From Marsupella aquatica (taxonomy: Eukaryota; Plantae; Marchantiophyta): 23,834 nt of DNA. A program made the position numbers and the translations under genes. Where the stretch lies: positions 1-23,834 of the forward strand of contig CCZZQB010000012.1 in NCBI GenBank assembly GCA_973895155.1, written 5' to 3'. How positions within the stretch are numbered: position 1 is the first letter of the stretch; each line of letters opens with the position of its first letter. The notes below the pieces were generated by a model. The model was not told where the DNA came from and made no database searches. It worked only from the letters and a program-made list of their open reading frames with translations. Below are positions 18,702-23,834 of this stretch, in pieces.

Positions 18702-19409
18702 ATGGTGTCATATGAAATAAGTTGGATCAAGAAAAGGAAACAACCGCTGACCGCACTCATCGTCATCGTCTGGAGTGTCATCGGCCTTATCGCGGGCGGC
18801 ATGATCGCGACCGAATTCGGCCCGCTGTTCGGCTGGCGCAACATGGAAGGCATGTCGGCCTATTTCGGTCTGCTGTTCGGTTCGCCGCTGGGTCTCATCG
18901 CGGGCGCGGTGTTCGGCTATCGCATGTCGCGCGGCTTCGGCGAGGACGCCAAAAAGCGCGGCAACTTCCTGTTTCTCACGTTTGTCGGGGTCGGCGCGCT
19001 TATCGCGGGCATCGTTGCGCTTGAGGCGTATCGTACGCGCGATCATCTCGACCCTTCGCTGTCGATCACGTGCTACATGCGGCTGCCCGAAGGCGTGGCC
19101 ACGCCGCCGAAGGATACGAAGTCAACGCTTGAACTGCGCAGCGACAAGGAGACGCGCAGATCGTCGCCCTACAATGTGCCGGAGTGGGAAATGAAGGACG
19201 GGCGCGCGACCGCGCAGAACAGCGTCGAGGTCTATCGCGCGACCGTGAATCGCGAGGCGGCGGTGACGATTGGCAATGGCCCGACCTATGTGTTCAGGCT
19301 CAACGCGCCCGCGCGGCCGAAGATCTATTCGTACGAGGGTGCGTGGCAGAAGGCGGACGCGGTGGAAGGCGCGGGTGGTGTGGGGATGGAGGCGAGGTGC
19401 GGGATGTGA
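18702..19409 (+). CDS. Hypothetical membrane protein (about 3 N-terminal TM helices plus a soluble C-terminal domain)
   Basis: Hydrophobic segments LIVIVWSVIGLIAGGMIA, YFGLLFGSPLGLIAGAVFG and FLFLTFVGVGALIAGIVAL, with high-GC codon usage. The start is uncertain (18702 ATG or 18747 CTG). Confidence 0.75.
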   Translation: MVSYEISWIKKRKQPLTALIVIVWSVIGLIAGGMIATEFGPLFGWRNMEGMSAYFGLLFGSPLGLIAGAVFGYRMSRGFGEDAKKRGNFLFLTFVGVGALIAGIVALEAYRTRDHLDPSLSITCYMRLPEGVATPPKDTKSTLELRSDKETRRSSPYNVPEWEMKDGRATAQNSVEVYRATVNREAAVTIGNGPTYVFRLNAPARPKIYSYEGAWQKADAVEGAGGVGMEARCGM

Positions 19410-19413
19410 GGAG

Positions 19414-21093
19414 CTAATTGAAAGAGTTGCGAAGATCTTTTTGCACAGCCTCGAGCAATTTTGGGCCCTTCGCAATAATATCGGTCGCGCCCAACTTGTC
19501 ATAGCAAGCTTTGACGGCCTTAATGCTTTCCTCAATCACGTCTTGTTTGATCGCCTTAGGATCGATAGCTGCGATGTGCTTCACTGCCGGTTTTGCGCTC
19601 TTCGTTAAGATCGCTGCTGCATACATGACGACGTAGAACAAAAGATTGTTCTTATCTTTTGGCAGAAGGTCTTCACGCGATCTTAGATTTGCTTGCGCCA
19701 ACTTTATTATGCTAGTCGCGACCAAATAAAGCTCGATGGGATAGTCAGTGCTGAAAATCTTGCCGTAGTCCTCGTCTTTCTTGAGAAGTGATGAAGGGCG
19801 CGCGCGCGCGTCATCGGGTCGTTGCATAGCAATGGACATAATCGATTGAGCAACCAGCGGGATGCTGATTATTTGTTCGACTGCACGACCTTCGTTTTTG
19901 TGTCCATTCTTTCGTCGATCGTAGAAAAATCCAAACGGACGTAGGAATTCTTCGATGTCTCGTTGAATTTTATCCGTCGCGCGGAGCGATGCCGGAGGAA
20001 TATTGGTTTGACTATTGGTTGCCTTGATAATTCGGTCGCTACTTTCCGCGTTTGACGGTATCACGACTCGAACCATGACACTCCGGTCGTCGTCGGCGGT
20101 GTTAGAGTCGCGAAAATACTTGAATATTTCGGTAGACGTTTGAAGTCCGTTCACTAATTGCGGGTCTTCGATTGTGAGCGTCTTACTGCTTTGTACCGCT
20201 TTATGCGCGATGATAGTGACACCGTTATTGAGCCACCAAAAATCCTCGCCACCCTTCTTTTTGAGGGATTTTTGAATCTCATCGTTGACTTGATTCGTGC
20301 CTTGGTAGTCCCGCACGTTAGCTTCAAATAAATTCTTTCGAAGGTTCCCGTGAGTGTCGGTGATGAATTTATCGAATTCACCCAGCTTGACTAGCGCTAT
20401 ATATCCACCTTGGGCGCTGATGCTTTCGTTGACGGTTAGGTTGAAAGATGTGAGTGGCTGTCGTCGTGCAAATTCTAACAAATCTGAAGCGCCAAAGAAT
20501 TCGAAACTAAAAGTTGCAGACGAAAACAGGCTTTTCACTGCTTTCTCTAAACTTAAGACTTTACGAGCAACGTTTGGATGAACTTCTTTTGAATTTCCCC
20601 GCGTAGCGTAAATGTAGGAAAATTTTAGCGTTGGGAATCTAGCTGCTAGAGCTTTATAGACATTTCTAAAGTTCGATATGTTTGATCGGACGCCTTCATT
20701 GTATACTTTTTTGAGTGCCTCAACTTGCTTGCTAAGATCAAGCAGATCGTTGGTTGCCGCAACAAATCGATTGATAGTGTCTTCGTCAAATCCGTCAGAT
20801 TGTTTGCTTTGAACTATGATTATTTCAAGTGCTGCATTCTTTTTTAAGCTGGTTGCGTCGAAATCGTCCTGTACCAATTCGCCGTTTGCAAAGATATATA
20901 TTCCATCAATGCCTCCGTCGCCGCCGTTTCCTACAAGGCCTGACTCAATTTCTTCTTCTGAAAGATCGTAGTCCTTCAAAACCTGCTCAACTACATACAT
21001 TTCGAAAAATGCAGATTTAGTAATTGAAGCCGCGCGCTGGCTTCTTTGCTGCTCTAATGCTTGGTCTAAAATGATCTGATCATTGTTCGCCAT
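19414..21093 (-). CDS. AIPR family protein (abortive infection phage resistance), about 559 aa
   Basis: Contains LFEANVRDYQG, FWWLNNGVTII, PQLVNGLQTSTEI and IIKATNSQT, characteristic AIPR motifs. The N-terminus carries GDGGIDG...IVQSK. The start is MANNDQ at 21093, or the alternative at 21111. The gene is clearly AT-richer than its flanks. Confidence 0.9.
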   Translation of the reverse strand: MANNDQIILDQALEQQRSQRAASITKSAFFEMYVVEQVLKDYDLSEEEIESGLVGNGGDGGIDGIYIFANGELVQDDFDATSLKKNAALEIIIVQSKQSDGFDEDTINRFVAATNDLLDLSKQVEALKKVYNEGVRSNISNFRNVYKALAARFPTLKFSYIYATRGNSKEVHPNVARKVLSLEKAVKSLFSSATFSFEFFGASDLLEFARRQPLTSFNLTVNESISAQGGYIALVKLGEFDKFITDTHGNLRKNLFEANVRDYQGTNQVNDEIQKSLKKKGGEDFWWLNNGVTIIAHKAVQSSKTLTIEDPQLVNGLQTSTEIFKYFRDSNTADDDRSVMVRVVIPSNAESSDRIIKATNSQTNIPPASLRATDKIQRDIEEFLRPFGFFYDRRKNGHKNEGRAVEQIISIPLVAQSIMSIAMQRPDDARARPSSLLKKDEDYGKIFSTDYPIELYLVATSIIKLAQANLRSREDLLPKDKNNLLFYVVMYAAAILTKSAKPAVKHIAAIDPKAIKQDVIEESIKAVKACYDKLGATDIIAKGPKLLEAVQKDLRNSFN

Positions 21094-21161
21094 ATCGGAC
21101 CCAAATTTCAATTTGTGAAAAAATCGGTGAATACTGGCCGTATATCTTTTGCGTTACAACC

Positions 21162-21190
21162 TTGACTTAGCTTTGGACTAAGATTATATT
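21162..21190 (+). promoter_or_regulatory. Sigma70-type promoter TTGACT-N17-TATATT
   Basis: The -35 box is at 21162-21167 and the -10 box at 21185-21190, with an exact 17-nt spacer. The predicted TSS is about 21197-21198. Confidence 0.75.
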
Positions 21191-21196
21191 CCTATT

Positions 21197-21570
21197 CATC
21201 CCGCCCCACCTGAGGGGCGTTGTCCGGGACGCTTGATTGCGCGGGGCGGGATGCGGCGCCCGCGCGCGTGAGGAGTGACGCACTCCTTCGCACCCGGGAG
21301 GCCCCGGTTCGCCGACCGGCTCCACTACGGGAGCCTGCCTTCGGTGGCTGCACGCGGCGCAGGTGACGAGCGGCGAAATCCGCTCCGATGAACGCAAAGT
21401 CAAAAGCTTTGCGGATCCCGCGCCCGGAAGAGCGGCACCGGGGACTGAAAAACCGCGACGGAGCGTCGAAAGGCGTTACGCGATGAGTGCGGTGTTTCGA
21501 AAACATCGCGGCCCATCGCGGCACTACCAAGTCGCGCCTTTCGGCGCTCCGCTCCCTCTTCGATGAGGGA
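21197..21570 (+). ncRNA. Candidate highly structured non-coding RNA or repeat element (unassigned family)
   Basis: Perfect 11-bp stem 21197-21207/21243-21253, several hairpins, a 17-bp inverted repeat 21459-21475/21535-21551 with nested stems, and a terminal hairpin 21553-21570. There is no convincing ORF. Confidence 0.55.
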
Positions 21571-21659
21571 CGAATTGAAAAATTGGACGACATCGTTGGA
21601 CGGACACCCGCTTTGGCGCGGAGACGTCATTCATCATGCGCGATCGGAAAGGACTAGCG

Positions 21660-21911
21660 ATGCAAACCACAAATCCACATCATGCCCGCAAGCTCTACGA
21701 CGTGCTGACGCGCATGGCGCAGATTCGAAACTGTTCGGCGACCTGCGATCTGGCCGATTGCCGACGCGCGCGAAAATGCGTGGGCATCGAACGCCGATGT
21801 GTGTGGACGCTGCCGGATCGGCCTTTCTGGCTGGCGCGGGATCATGTGGCCGAGTGGCACGACCTGGTGCGCTCCCGGCAGCAATGCCTCAAGGCACTCA
21901 GAGCCAAATGA
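21660..21911 (+). CDS. Small Cys-rich hypothetical protein (83 aa; C-x3-C-x4-C-x5-C-x6-C), putative metal-binding
   Basis: AAAGGA RBS precedes ATG 21660. Sequence ...RNCSATCDLADCRRARKCVGIERRCVW... Confidence 0.65.
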   Translation: MQTTNPHHARKLYDVLTRMAQIRNCSATCDLADCRRARKCVGIERRCVWTLPDRPFWLARDHVAEWHDLVRSRQQCLKALRAK

Positions 21912-22037
21912 TGCGGCAATTTGCGGCAAAGGTTGTTGGCCCAATATTTTCTCAATATTTTCTTGGCAACTTGCGCGGCGCTCAGGCGTTCCTATGTAGC
22001 GTTGTTTGCGCCATTCGGCGCTTTTGAGGATCGCGTG

Positions 22038-22625
22038 ATGCCGACCCATACGCCCGACGATATTCTGGAGCCGACGCGGGCCAAACCAAGGACTGGCGAA
22101 AAGGCTGGCGGGCCGCAAAAGCGCAGCACCACCATCGATCAGGACGGCAACGAAGTCCACGGTTCAAGGTCCGGCGGCTTTGCAGGCCGCATGAACAGCG
22201 GACCTTTCGGCGCGTCGGGACTGGATTTCGAGAATATTTCCGGCGCCATCGGCGGCATTTCGTTCGGCGCGCTCACGCGCGAACAGCGGTTCGCGCGGCT
22301 CGATGCGCTGGCGAAGCTGCTCGATGTCGCCTTCGTGCTGCCCGGAACGAATATCCGCTACGGCATCGATGGGCTTGTGGGTTTGATCCCGGTGGTCGGC
22401 GATTTGCTCACGACGGCGATCTCATTGTGGATCGTGCGCGAGGCGCGTTCGCTCGGCGCGCCGCGTCATGTGGTGGCGCGGATGCTGGGAAATGTGGCGC
22501 TGGATGGCGTGGTGGGACTTGTGCCGTTTGTCGGCGACGCGTTCGACGTGATGTTCCGCGCCAACATCCGCAACATGCGGCTGCTGCGAAAGTGGATGGA
22601 GAAGCAGCCGCGTCAGGACGTGTAG
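22038..22625 (+). CDS. DUF4112 domain-containing membrane protein (about 195 aa)
   Basis: LAKLLDVAFVLPGTNIRYGIDGLVGLIPVVGD...RMLGNVALDGVVGLVPFVGDAFDVMFRANIRN is a typical DUF4112 pattern. GAGGA RBS lies 7 nt before ATG 22038. Confidence 0.88.
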   Translation: MPTHTPDDILEPTRAKPRTGEKAGGPQKRSTTIDQDGNEVHGSRSGGFAGRMNSGPFGASGLDFENISGAIGGISFGALTREQRFARLDALAKLLDVAFVLPGTNIRYGIDGLVGLIPVVGDLLTTAISLWIVREARSLGAPRHVVARMLGNVALDGVVGLVPFVGDAFDVMFRANIRNMRLLRKWMEKQPRQDV

Positions 22626-22646
22626 GGAATTGAAAGCGGCCGGCGC

Positions 22647-22940
22647 TTAACCGGCAGCAGCCTGCTTTTCATCGTCCGAGGTCGGCGCAGGCTCTGGACG
22701 GTTGCGCTTGAGCGGAAACTCGGCCGACTCATAAAGAGTGCGGATGCCGCTCTGGTCGAAACGGGCCTCGTCCACCTGGAGGTAAGCGCCGTTCAGCGAG
22801 TCGGCGGGAAGCTGCTCGATGGCAAATTGCACGGCTTCGGCTGCGGTCGGAAAGCGGCGGTACGCGAAGCCGGCACGTTTCTTCTTGCGGATCGCCGCAG
22901 GAAACAACTCAGCTTCGGTATTGTAATTAAACGCAGCCAT
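22647..22940 (-). CDS. Conserved hypothetical protein (97 aa) of Rhizobiales type
   Basis: [14 protein letters not shown]...[19 protein letters not shown]...[11 protein letters not shown]...LYESAEFPL resembles an uncharacterised family I recall from this group. An AAGAAGG RBS-like motif lies upstream. Confidence 0.8.
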
Positions 22941-23160
22941 GGCTTCGGCCTTCTTGATGTTGATTTCGCTGACATGACGGGCGTGGCGCGGGTCGGAAGT
23001 GCCGTCGCGCGGCGTGCGTCATTCATTCCAAGAACAGTCCCTAATATAGGCCTTTTTCCGCCAATTGCGACCCGTCATTGGAAGCATGATGAATGGCGCG
23101 ATGAAACCTTCCGGTTCCTGATAAATGCTTGGAAATCAAGGCTCTATTGGTAAACGCGCA

Positions 23161-23190
23161 TGAAAATGCCCGCAGCGTTTAGCTGCGGGC
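23161..23190 (-). terminator. Rho-independent terminator of the 23204-23641 gene
   Basis: A 9-bp perfect stem GCCCGCAGC/GCTGCGGGC (23168-23176/23182-23190) is followed by ATTTTCA on the minus strand, 13 nt after the stop codon. Confidence 0.75.
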
Positions 23191-23203
23191 TCGAGCGCTA
23201 TTT

Positions 23204-23641
23204 TCAGCGGATTTGAACGGTATCTGCGAACGGGCGCGGGCTCGATTTGTCCGTATCGGCAACCGCCATTTTTTCTTCGGTGATCGGCACGACGCGAAGC
23301 TGCGTTTGATAGGGCTCAATCTGCACGGCGGTGTTCGCCGTCAGCACGAATTTCTTCACGGGGGCCTGTTCCTGTTCGCCGCTGATGCCGCGCCTCTCGC
23401 GATATTGCCAAACCTGCATGGAACCGCGTTCGACAAGCAGCTTGGTGACGCCATCGGCATTCTTGCCGGGGAGCGCATCGACTTCCTGCTTGGTGAGACC
23501 GATGATGATCGCGTCTTTCGGCGTGCTCACCTTGAACAGCTTCACCTTATCCACGGCCAATGCTGGGTGTGATACGATGGCCTCGACGATGAGGCCAACG
23601 AGGCCAAGGCCCAGGACGATATTGGTCGAGGTGCGAGACAT
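23204..23641 (-). CDS. Secreted hypothetical protein (about 145 aa)
   Basis: Signal peptide MSRTSTNIVLGLGLVGLIVEAIVSHPALA|VDKVKLFKV. AAGGA RBS lies 8 nt upstream of ATG 23641. Confidence 0.8.
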   Translation of the reverse strand: MSRTSTNIVLGLGLVGLIVEAIVSHPALAVDKVKLFKVSTPKDAIIIGLTKQEVDALPGKNADGVTKLLVERGSMQVWQYRERRGISGEQEQAPVKKFVLTANTAVQIEPYQTQLRVVPITEEKMAVADTDKSSPRPFADTVQIR

Positions 23642-23834
23642 TGCACAATTCCTTCGAGTGATTTGGCGATTTTTTTGTTTTTGAGACCGGGGGCCGGAAC
23701 ATAAGGCCTCCTGCGGCAACAATGTGGCCGCAGGCGCCCGCCGGTCCTTTATTTTGGTAGATATAGAGACGTTGTTACTTCGGCAAAAGTTTCAGTGCCG
23801 CCGAGTTGATGCAGTAACGCAGCCCGGTGGGGCC

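Follow-up and report, generated by a model that had tools for sequence, protein, structure and literature searches.

A structured RNA of ~430 nt is conserved on the plus strand of the bacterial part of the analysed DNA (the window, 23,834 nucleotides in all), where it extends from position 21197 to ~21628, and 17 distinct homologous copies of this non-coding region, 71–96% identical to the window over ~430 nt, have been identified. As judged by comparison of these copies, the conserved plus-strand fold, with its covariation, is that of a genuine structured RNA, which belongs to a previously undescribed family confined to an Afipia-like clade and precedes the gene of a small basic protein with four invariant cysteines (the mini-protein).

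Large, intricately folded bacterial RNAs without an assigned function are rare and, to our knowledge, each large folded bacterial RNA has opened new biochemistry, including ribozymes, guide RNAs and RNA-only assemblies. The candidate described here is well defined, with a promoter, a predicted 5′ end, a covariation-backed fold, a putative partner gene and a relative that serves as a natural knock-out, and is therefore directly testable; being restricted to an uncultured Afipia-like clade, it is of limited general importance. Existing annotation is also corrected, in that the protein of 133–190 aa called opposite the RNA is very likely false.

Genomic setting and homologous loci

The window is chimeric, with eukaryotic rDNA from position 1 to ~17395 and bacterial DNA from 17396 onwards. 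The rDNA holds two complete 18S–5.8S–28S units and a third 18S gene broken off after ~280 nt, with the following rRNA genes:

679–2488 and 8894–10706: 18S rRNA genes, rDNA part of the window
3314–6711 and 11533–14929: 28S rRNA genes, rDNA part of the window

In a blastn comparison with the Afipia metagenome contig L025, similarity at 94–95% identity sets in exactly at 17396, midway through a GGDEF gene. The junction at 17395/17396 joins rDNA to the middle of this bacterial gene, and the chimera is probably an artefact of assembly or contamination rather than biology. The DUF4112 protein encoded downstream of the mini-protein gene is 98% identical to a protein labelled Afipia sp.

The setting is chromosomal and syntenic across loci, in the order rpoD, SLT, GGDEF, a 32-aa Lys-rich ORF, a gene of ~250 aa, variable cargo, the RNA, the mini-protein gene, sometimes a GreA-like gene, DUF4112, a 97-aa ORF, msrB and msrA. 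The Lys-rich ORF (MAKGKDKGSKEKKKPK...; 17745–17843, plus strand) is conserved and comes after GGDEF at every syntenic locus. The relative L030 (a 3.7-Mb contig; 3721–5549) has DUF4112 only 75 nt after GGDEF and is without the whole module, comprising the 32-aa ORF, the 250-aa gene, the cargo, the RNA and the mini-protein gene; this arrangement is a natural deletion or the pre-insertion state of the module. Since RNA, mini-protein gene and cargo are all missing there, the module is accessory.

Homologous loci were collected through homologues of the mini-protein, a 21-nt RNA pattern in metagenomes, the DUF4112 neighbour, and blastn among the loci already collected. Where a source is named, it is Afipia sp., Hyphomicrobiales/Rhizobiales (including unclassified members) or a metagenome genome of Pseudomonadota. 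The adjacent mini-proteins are 29–86% identical across loci, falling to 29–38% in the most distant ones. The 21-nt core pattern gave true homologues in four of nine metagenome matches (L010, L012, L014 and L015); the other five (L008, L009, L011, L013 and L016) were rejected as chance matches by alignment and by a covariance model of the central domain of the RNA. Over 171 kb, this model picks out a single copy per locus, in every case on the strand of the RNA, and has no match in the chance-match loci, the rDNA or L030. A suggestion in the initial annotation that similar sequences recur in Bradyrhizobium-related genomes was not borne out: in the related DNA covered (~170 kb), each of 31 loci has the stem motif once, and no Bradyrhizobium locus was recovered.

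Promoter, 5′ boundary and upstream cargo

The features at the 5′ end of the RNA are as follows:

21162–21167, plus strand: −35 box TTGACT, a sequence match, found as TTGAC[A/C/T] in 11 loci
21185–21190, plus strand: −10 box TATATT, after a 17-nt spacer
21197–21198, plus strand: predicted transcription start, 7–8 nt past the −10 box by promoter geometry
21197 to ~21628, plus strand: conserved structured RNA

The near-consensus promoter TTGACT-N17-TATATT, first noted from the window by itself, is present as described, matches the sigma70 consensus at 10 of 12 positions, and keeps its distance to the RNA across 11 loci: in each of the 11 with an intact 5′ end, a TTGAC[A/C/T] box lies 28–30 nt 5′ of the first conserved base. 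Promoter-like sites number three in 20800–22000, against 0.7 expected. Two alleles of the downstream element are evident, one with TATATT followed by cctatY (the window, L003, L014, L015, L021/L022 and L027), and the other with CATCTT after a conserved AGGAAAATAATCC (L025, L006/L007 and L031); L002 has, as read by eye, a shortened version of the CATCTT allele. The spacer and the DNA further upstream are not conserved across the 11 loci. Hexamers 17 nt apart, within the 16–18 nt expected of such promoters, and kept together with their spacing while the spacer drifts, point to a selected sigma70-type promoter at 21162–21190, from which transcription would start at 21197 or 21198.

That the promoter is placed for the first base of the structured RNA, as had also been proposed, agrees with the homology between close strains, which starts at 21196, and with the covariation, which backs the plus-strand fold. 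The span originally given, 21162–21390, does contain structured RNA but was drawn too short, the conserved block reaching ~21628 and being more than twice as long.

Immediately 5′ of the RNA lies a region that varies between strains:

19410–21195, unstranded: strain-variable AT-rich cargo slot directly 5′ of the RNA, GC 40–47%

Here the cargo is an AbiU/AIPR abortive-infection gene on the minus strand (19414–21093; PADLOC AbiU, E = 7e-199; Pfam AIPR), and the promoter also falls within the slot. Homology between the window and L025 ends at 19409 and returns at 21196, the base before the 5′ stem. Closely related strains differ in cargo, with a DUF1232 gene and a 240-aa ORF in L025 (3816–5155), and MgtC and Abi_alpha (PF14337) in L021/L022 (about 600–3240 in L021); other slots were seen at 6300–7500 in L006 and 3890–5138 in L027, and ORFs without assignment at further loci. 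PADLOC and Pfam searches of the cargo genes of other loci mostly gave no match. The occurrence of two different abortive-infection genes suggests a small defence-gene hotspot, bordered by the first base of the RNA. A possible recombination repeat, GGTGCGGGATG at 19396–19406, which resembles the 3′ arm of the stem, was rejected as a chance-level likeness inside a conserved gene.

Two further observations concern this boundary. Metagenome contigs often break inside the RNA, as at the contig starts of L001, L004, L005, L010, L012 and L017–L020, and L010 and L012, from one assembly, have the same first base and ~100 nt of identical sequence; such breaks fit an assembly graph interrupted where coexisting strains have a common invariant RNA and differ upstream. 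The 5′ hairpin of L021 is interrupted at 3298–3546 by a MITE-like, AT-rich element of ~250 nt that has terminal inverted repeats (GGGGGTATAGCGA...), is flanked by ~17 nt of duplicated hairpin sequence and parts the promoter from the remainder of the RNA; L022 has the same insertion.

Fold of the RNA and covariation

The fold consists of a 5′ hairpin domain, a separate hairpin, a central multi-helix domain, a 3′ domain and a last conserved hairpin, with the following elements:

21197–21253, plus strand: 5′ hairpin domain, an 11-bp stem (21197–21207/21243–21253) around a hairpin (21215–21221/21228–21234)
21270–21288, plus strand: hairpin GAGGAGUG/CACUCCUU, four of eight pairs with compensatory changes
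21302–21443, plus strand: central multi-helix domain, from RNAalifold on a MAFFT alignment
21302–21308/21437–21443 plus 21311–21314/21433–21436, plus strand: long-range closing helix (11 bp) of the central domain
21318–21335, 21337–21348, 21368–21385 (GAAA loop) and 21393–21413 (variable), plus strand: hairpins inside the central domain
21353–21363/21417–21426, plus strand: inner stem of the central domain, above the variable hairpin 21393–21413
21459–21570, plus strand: 3′ domain, a 17-bp helix around a long hairpin (21479–21520), and then a hairpin (21553–21570)
21599–21628, plus strand: last conserved hairpin, a CCCGC/GCGGG core (21607–21621) within GACG/CGTC

For the central domain, a plain MAFFT alignment of 14 sequences over 21300–21446 was folded with RNAalifold, giving 39 pairs, 17 of them with compensatory changes. 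An alignment fitted to the covariance model has 96% of cells paired and 23 pairs changed on both sides, against 7.9 ± 1.7 in shuffled controls and 3–8 when the pairing partner is slid; this alignment includes one chance row, and 17 of 39 is the conservative figure. Over the whole RNA, an 87-pair model on the MAFFT alignment has 95% of cells canonical and 18 pairs with compensatory changes, compared with 6.6 ± 1.6 in shuffles (none of 500 reaching 18) and 2–8 in slid controls. Covariation among homologues thus exceeds both shuffled and slid controls, and G–U pairs are found only on the plus strand. Folding energy relative to dinucleotide shuffles depends on the span considered, being marginal for 21197–21390 alone (z = −1.78, with 12 of 200 shuffles as good) and strong for 21197–21640 (z = −5.5 on the plus strand, −4.25 on the minus strand).

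All seven helices named in the initial annotation are present in the window as sequences and form part of its minimum-free-energy fold, and five hold in the homologues. The AGGAGTG/CACTCCT and GGCTCC/GGAGCC hairpins each have four covarying pairs and GAGCGG/CCGCTC has one, while the inner GGCGT/ACGCT hairpin of the 5′ domain stays paired through C/U changes opposite G. The perfect 11-bp stem at 21197 is likewise present and 97% paired across homologues, with changes only from C to U opposite G and no double compensatory changes; a competing fold, in which 21202–21207 pairs locally with 21214–21219 and 21239–21245 with 21259–21265, fits the data equally well, and the stem is best described as compatible with pairing rather than proven. 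As the 5′ domain has only C/U changes opposite G, the plus strand is the folded one. Two of the seven helices do not hold. CGCGTG/CACGCG, proposed to close the multiloop, is 84% paired without covariation and has its terminal pair broken in four sequences; the CCGGT arm of the supposed local CCGGT/ACCGG hairpin pairs instead with ACCGGGG at 21437–21443, ~130 nt downstream, in a long-range helix with five covarying pairs. A minimum-free-energy pairing of 21309–21316 with 21341–21347 was also discarded, a G-to-A change breaking it in half of the sequences.

Several hairpins vary in sequence and keep their form: the variable hairpin 21393–21413 differs in almost every homologue and refolds every time, the long hairpin 21479–21520 has a mid-stem sequence that differs in nearly every homologue yet always refolds, and the hairpin 21599–21628 refolds in all homologues despite different sequences. 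The 17-bp helix (21459–21476/21534–21551) is almost invariant, with no double compensatory changes, and could alternatively form a pair of local hairpins capped by GNRA and UUYC loops; a GAAA to GUGA change keeps the GNRA loop at the expense of the helix. Competing folds therefore exist at two places, the 5′ domain and the 3′ domain. Unpaired purine-rich stretches, such as 21422–21450, are highly conserved.

On the opposite strand, an ORF of 133 aa (21192–21593) is called as a 190-aa gene in L025–L029 (5017–5589, minus strand). The longest open frame over the RNA switches strand and frame between homologues, none being common to them, and both the RNA and the minus-strand ORF contain indels of 1, 2, 18 and 35 nt; with no shared reading frame and such indels, the 190-aa call is spurious, and the ORF called opposite the RNA (133–190 aa) is in all likelihood not a real gene.

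The mini-protein gene and the proposed role of the RNA

Downstream of the last hairpin, the following features were identified:

21645–21652, plus strand: Shine-Dalgarno-like GGAAAGGA of the small ORF, read from the sequence
21660–21911, plus strand: gene for the basic Cys4 mini-protein, 83 aa, always downstream of the RNA

The mini-protein family comprises proteins of 83–111 aa, all basic (pI 9.3–11.1), with invariant C29, C34, R35, R36, C40 and C47 in the motif C-x4-CRR-x3-C-x6-C, and is tiny, with six clusters, at 50% identity, in a collection of 1.8 billion representatives. Structure prediction gives a helical hairpin that carries a Cys-rich loop (pLDDT 78); no Pfam family was assigned, and a fold search of the PDB gave no match below E = 5. 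Nucleic-acid binding by the mini-protein is a prediction from its charge and cysteines only.

Wherever a locus extends far enough upstream, the RNA precedes the mini-protein gene on the same strand; this holds even for P0014, where protein identity is 30%, and both are absent from L030. No intrinsic terminator was found on the plus strand between the RNA and the ORF, and in 9–10 loci the ATG lies 25–35 nt past the last hairpin with a good ribosome-binding site, for which reasons a single transcription unit is the simplest reading. Purine-rich sites precede the ATG in homologues too; the conserved fold does not reach the Shine-Dalgarno site, and no sequestering helix was seen. In ~5 lineages, REP-like or other insertions of 55–170 nt separate the RNA from the ORF, so that tight translational coupling is not required. 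REP-like GC hairpins (GTCCCCGC...GCGGGGAC) occupy this position at 820–925 in L003, 440–565 in L004 and 1–115 in L023.

Strict co-inheritance with a basic Cys4 protein, together with the better conservation of the RNA, indicates an RNA–protein partnership. The favoured reading, held tentatively and with slightly less than even confidence, is that a leader RNA co-transcribed with the mini-protein gene is the binding partner of the encoded protein. The promoter at 21162–21190 would start a ~430-nt RNA at 21197 or 21198, running to ~21628, which would fold into the 5′ hairpin, a central domain with its 11-bp closing helix, and a 3′ domain with the 17-bp helix and long hairpin, and the RNA and mini-protein gene would be transcribed as one unit. 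The mini-protein may then bind the folded leader, perhaps in a manner set by the metal or redox state of the four cysteines, and could either feed back on its own mRNA or build a stable RNA–protein particle with the leader; candidate switches are the two sites at which a long helix competes with two local hairpins. The promoter motifs and their conservation, the fold with its covariation, the strict association of RNA and gene and the lack of a match to any known family are observed, and it is predicted that the unit is transcribed, that RNA and gene share a transcript, and that the protein binds and regulates. A bolder form of the proposal, that the RNA (~430 nt, at least 12 helices) founds a new class of large non-coding RNA, forming with the Cys4 mini-protein a ribonucleoprotein that has a cellular role of its own beyond that of a leader, seems doubtful, and if true could tie that role to redox or metal state or to the adjoining defence-gene slot.

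Among alternatives, a stand-alone large non-coding RNA acting in trans, alone or in a particle, with the mini-protein gene merely co-located or read through, is rather unlikely and ranks next after the leader model. The conserved, near-consensus promoter, the far better conservation of the RNA than of the mini-protein, a size and helix count resembling those of large ornate bacterial RNAs, the lack of a visible expression platform and the tolerance of insertions between RNA and ORF would all suit such an RNA. Against it, no terminator or other 3′ end signal is visible past 21628, and, over deep divergence, the RNA strictly keeps its place beside one gene family, in the same order and on the same strand.

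A riboswitch-type leader, sensing a small molecule or ion and controlling the mini-protein gene, and perhaps DUF4112 as well, appears unlikely. Its position as a 5′ leader on the strand of the gene, the conserved unpaired purine-rich stretches (for example 21422–21450) and the mutually exclusive pairings of the 5′ and 3′ domains are consistent with this role, but neither a terminator nor a Shine-Dalgarno-sequestering helix is seen, the RNA is tied to a single tiny gene family that gives no clue to a ligand, no riboswitch in Rfam matches, and the length of ~430 nt is about double that of the largest known aptamers.

A diverged member of a described RNA family, missed by covariance models, is very improbable. 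Rfam searches can overlook remote members, and the best match, to Burkholderiales-2 (RF02917), reached 20.9 bits (E = 0.96) through a likeness to the GC-rich two-hairpin motif overlapping 21190–21267; this score is, however, far under the gathering score of 67.9, and the match, to the opposite strand, extends over the 5′ hairpin only, a chance-level resemblance. Against Rfam 15 at gathering scores, only eukaryotic rRNAs pass in the whole window; a permissive search of 20900–22000 gave no match with E below 0.96, and five homologous loci gave none within the RNA. The original impression that the RNA corresponds to no known riboswitch or housekeeping RNA is therefore upheld by covariance search. 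ARAGORN reported no tRNA or tmRNA in 17000–23834, no reverse transcriptase domain suggestive of a retron was found in the neighbouring ORFs of the loci examined, no tandem repeat family of the type III toxin–antitoxin kind was found in 21197–21650, and no paper describing the RNA was located in literature searches.

A DNA-level element, either a dispersed repeat of REP/MITE type or a recombination site, is more improbable again: the 5′ edge of the RNA does coincide with the boundary of the cargo slot, and the 5′ hairpin of L021/L022 carries a MITE-like insertion, but the element is single-copy per locus in the ~170 kb of related DNA, holds a syntenic chromosomal position and has strand-specific covariation with G–U pairs, and no match was obtained by blastn of 21150–21660 against plasmids or phages, or with two degenerate RNA patterns in viral contigs. 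Scarcely credible is a protein-coding origin through the minus-strand ORF 21192–21593, for, although the ORF exists and genes are called over the same stretch in L025–L029, it has no Pfam family, its frame is not kept between homologues or through their indels, and substitutions track helices, not codons.

Among known systems, the large ornate bacterial ncRNAs offer one comparison: as in OLE (and also ROOL and GOLLD), a large multi-helix RNA is better conserved than the neighbouring genes; further likenesses to OLE are a membrane-protein gene close by, here DUF4112, and an RNA encoded beside and co-transcribed with genes for small partner proteins, co-transcription and partnership being putative in the present case. 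There is, however, no sequence or covariance-model similarity to OLE, ROOL or GOLLD, and in contrast to OLE the RNA is ~430 nt rather than ~600 nt or more, is found in Alphaproteobacteria rather than Bacillota, and has as its putative partner a soluble basic Cys4 mini-protein. HEARO/omega RNA with IscB, and the bridge RNA of IS110, are likewise structured RNAs in a 5′ UTR with their own promoter, and form a particle with the protein encoded just downstream, a step that is proposed here; the protein in the window is, by contrast, 83 aa long and without a nuclease or recombinase domain, there are no transposon ends, the chromosomal copy is single and syntenic, and the Rfam HEARO model gives no match.

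Autoregulatory leaders, such as the rne 5′ UTR and ribosomal-protein leaders, also place a long structured leader before the gene of the binder, proposed as such here. Conservation in such leaders is usually lower than in the protein, and the ribosome-binding site is involved, whereas the present RNA is better conserved than the protein and its ribosome-binding site lies outside the fold. Riboswitches, exemplified by cobalamin and T-box leaders, are comparable in their 5′ leader position, covariation-backed multi-helix core and competing helices; the RNA described here differs in matching no family, in being about twice the size, in lacking a terminator or anti-Shine-Dalgarno platform, and in a gene association that indicates no ligand.
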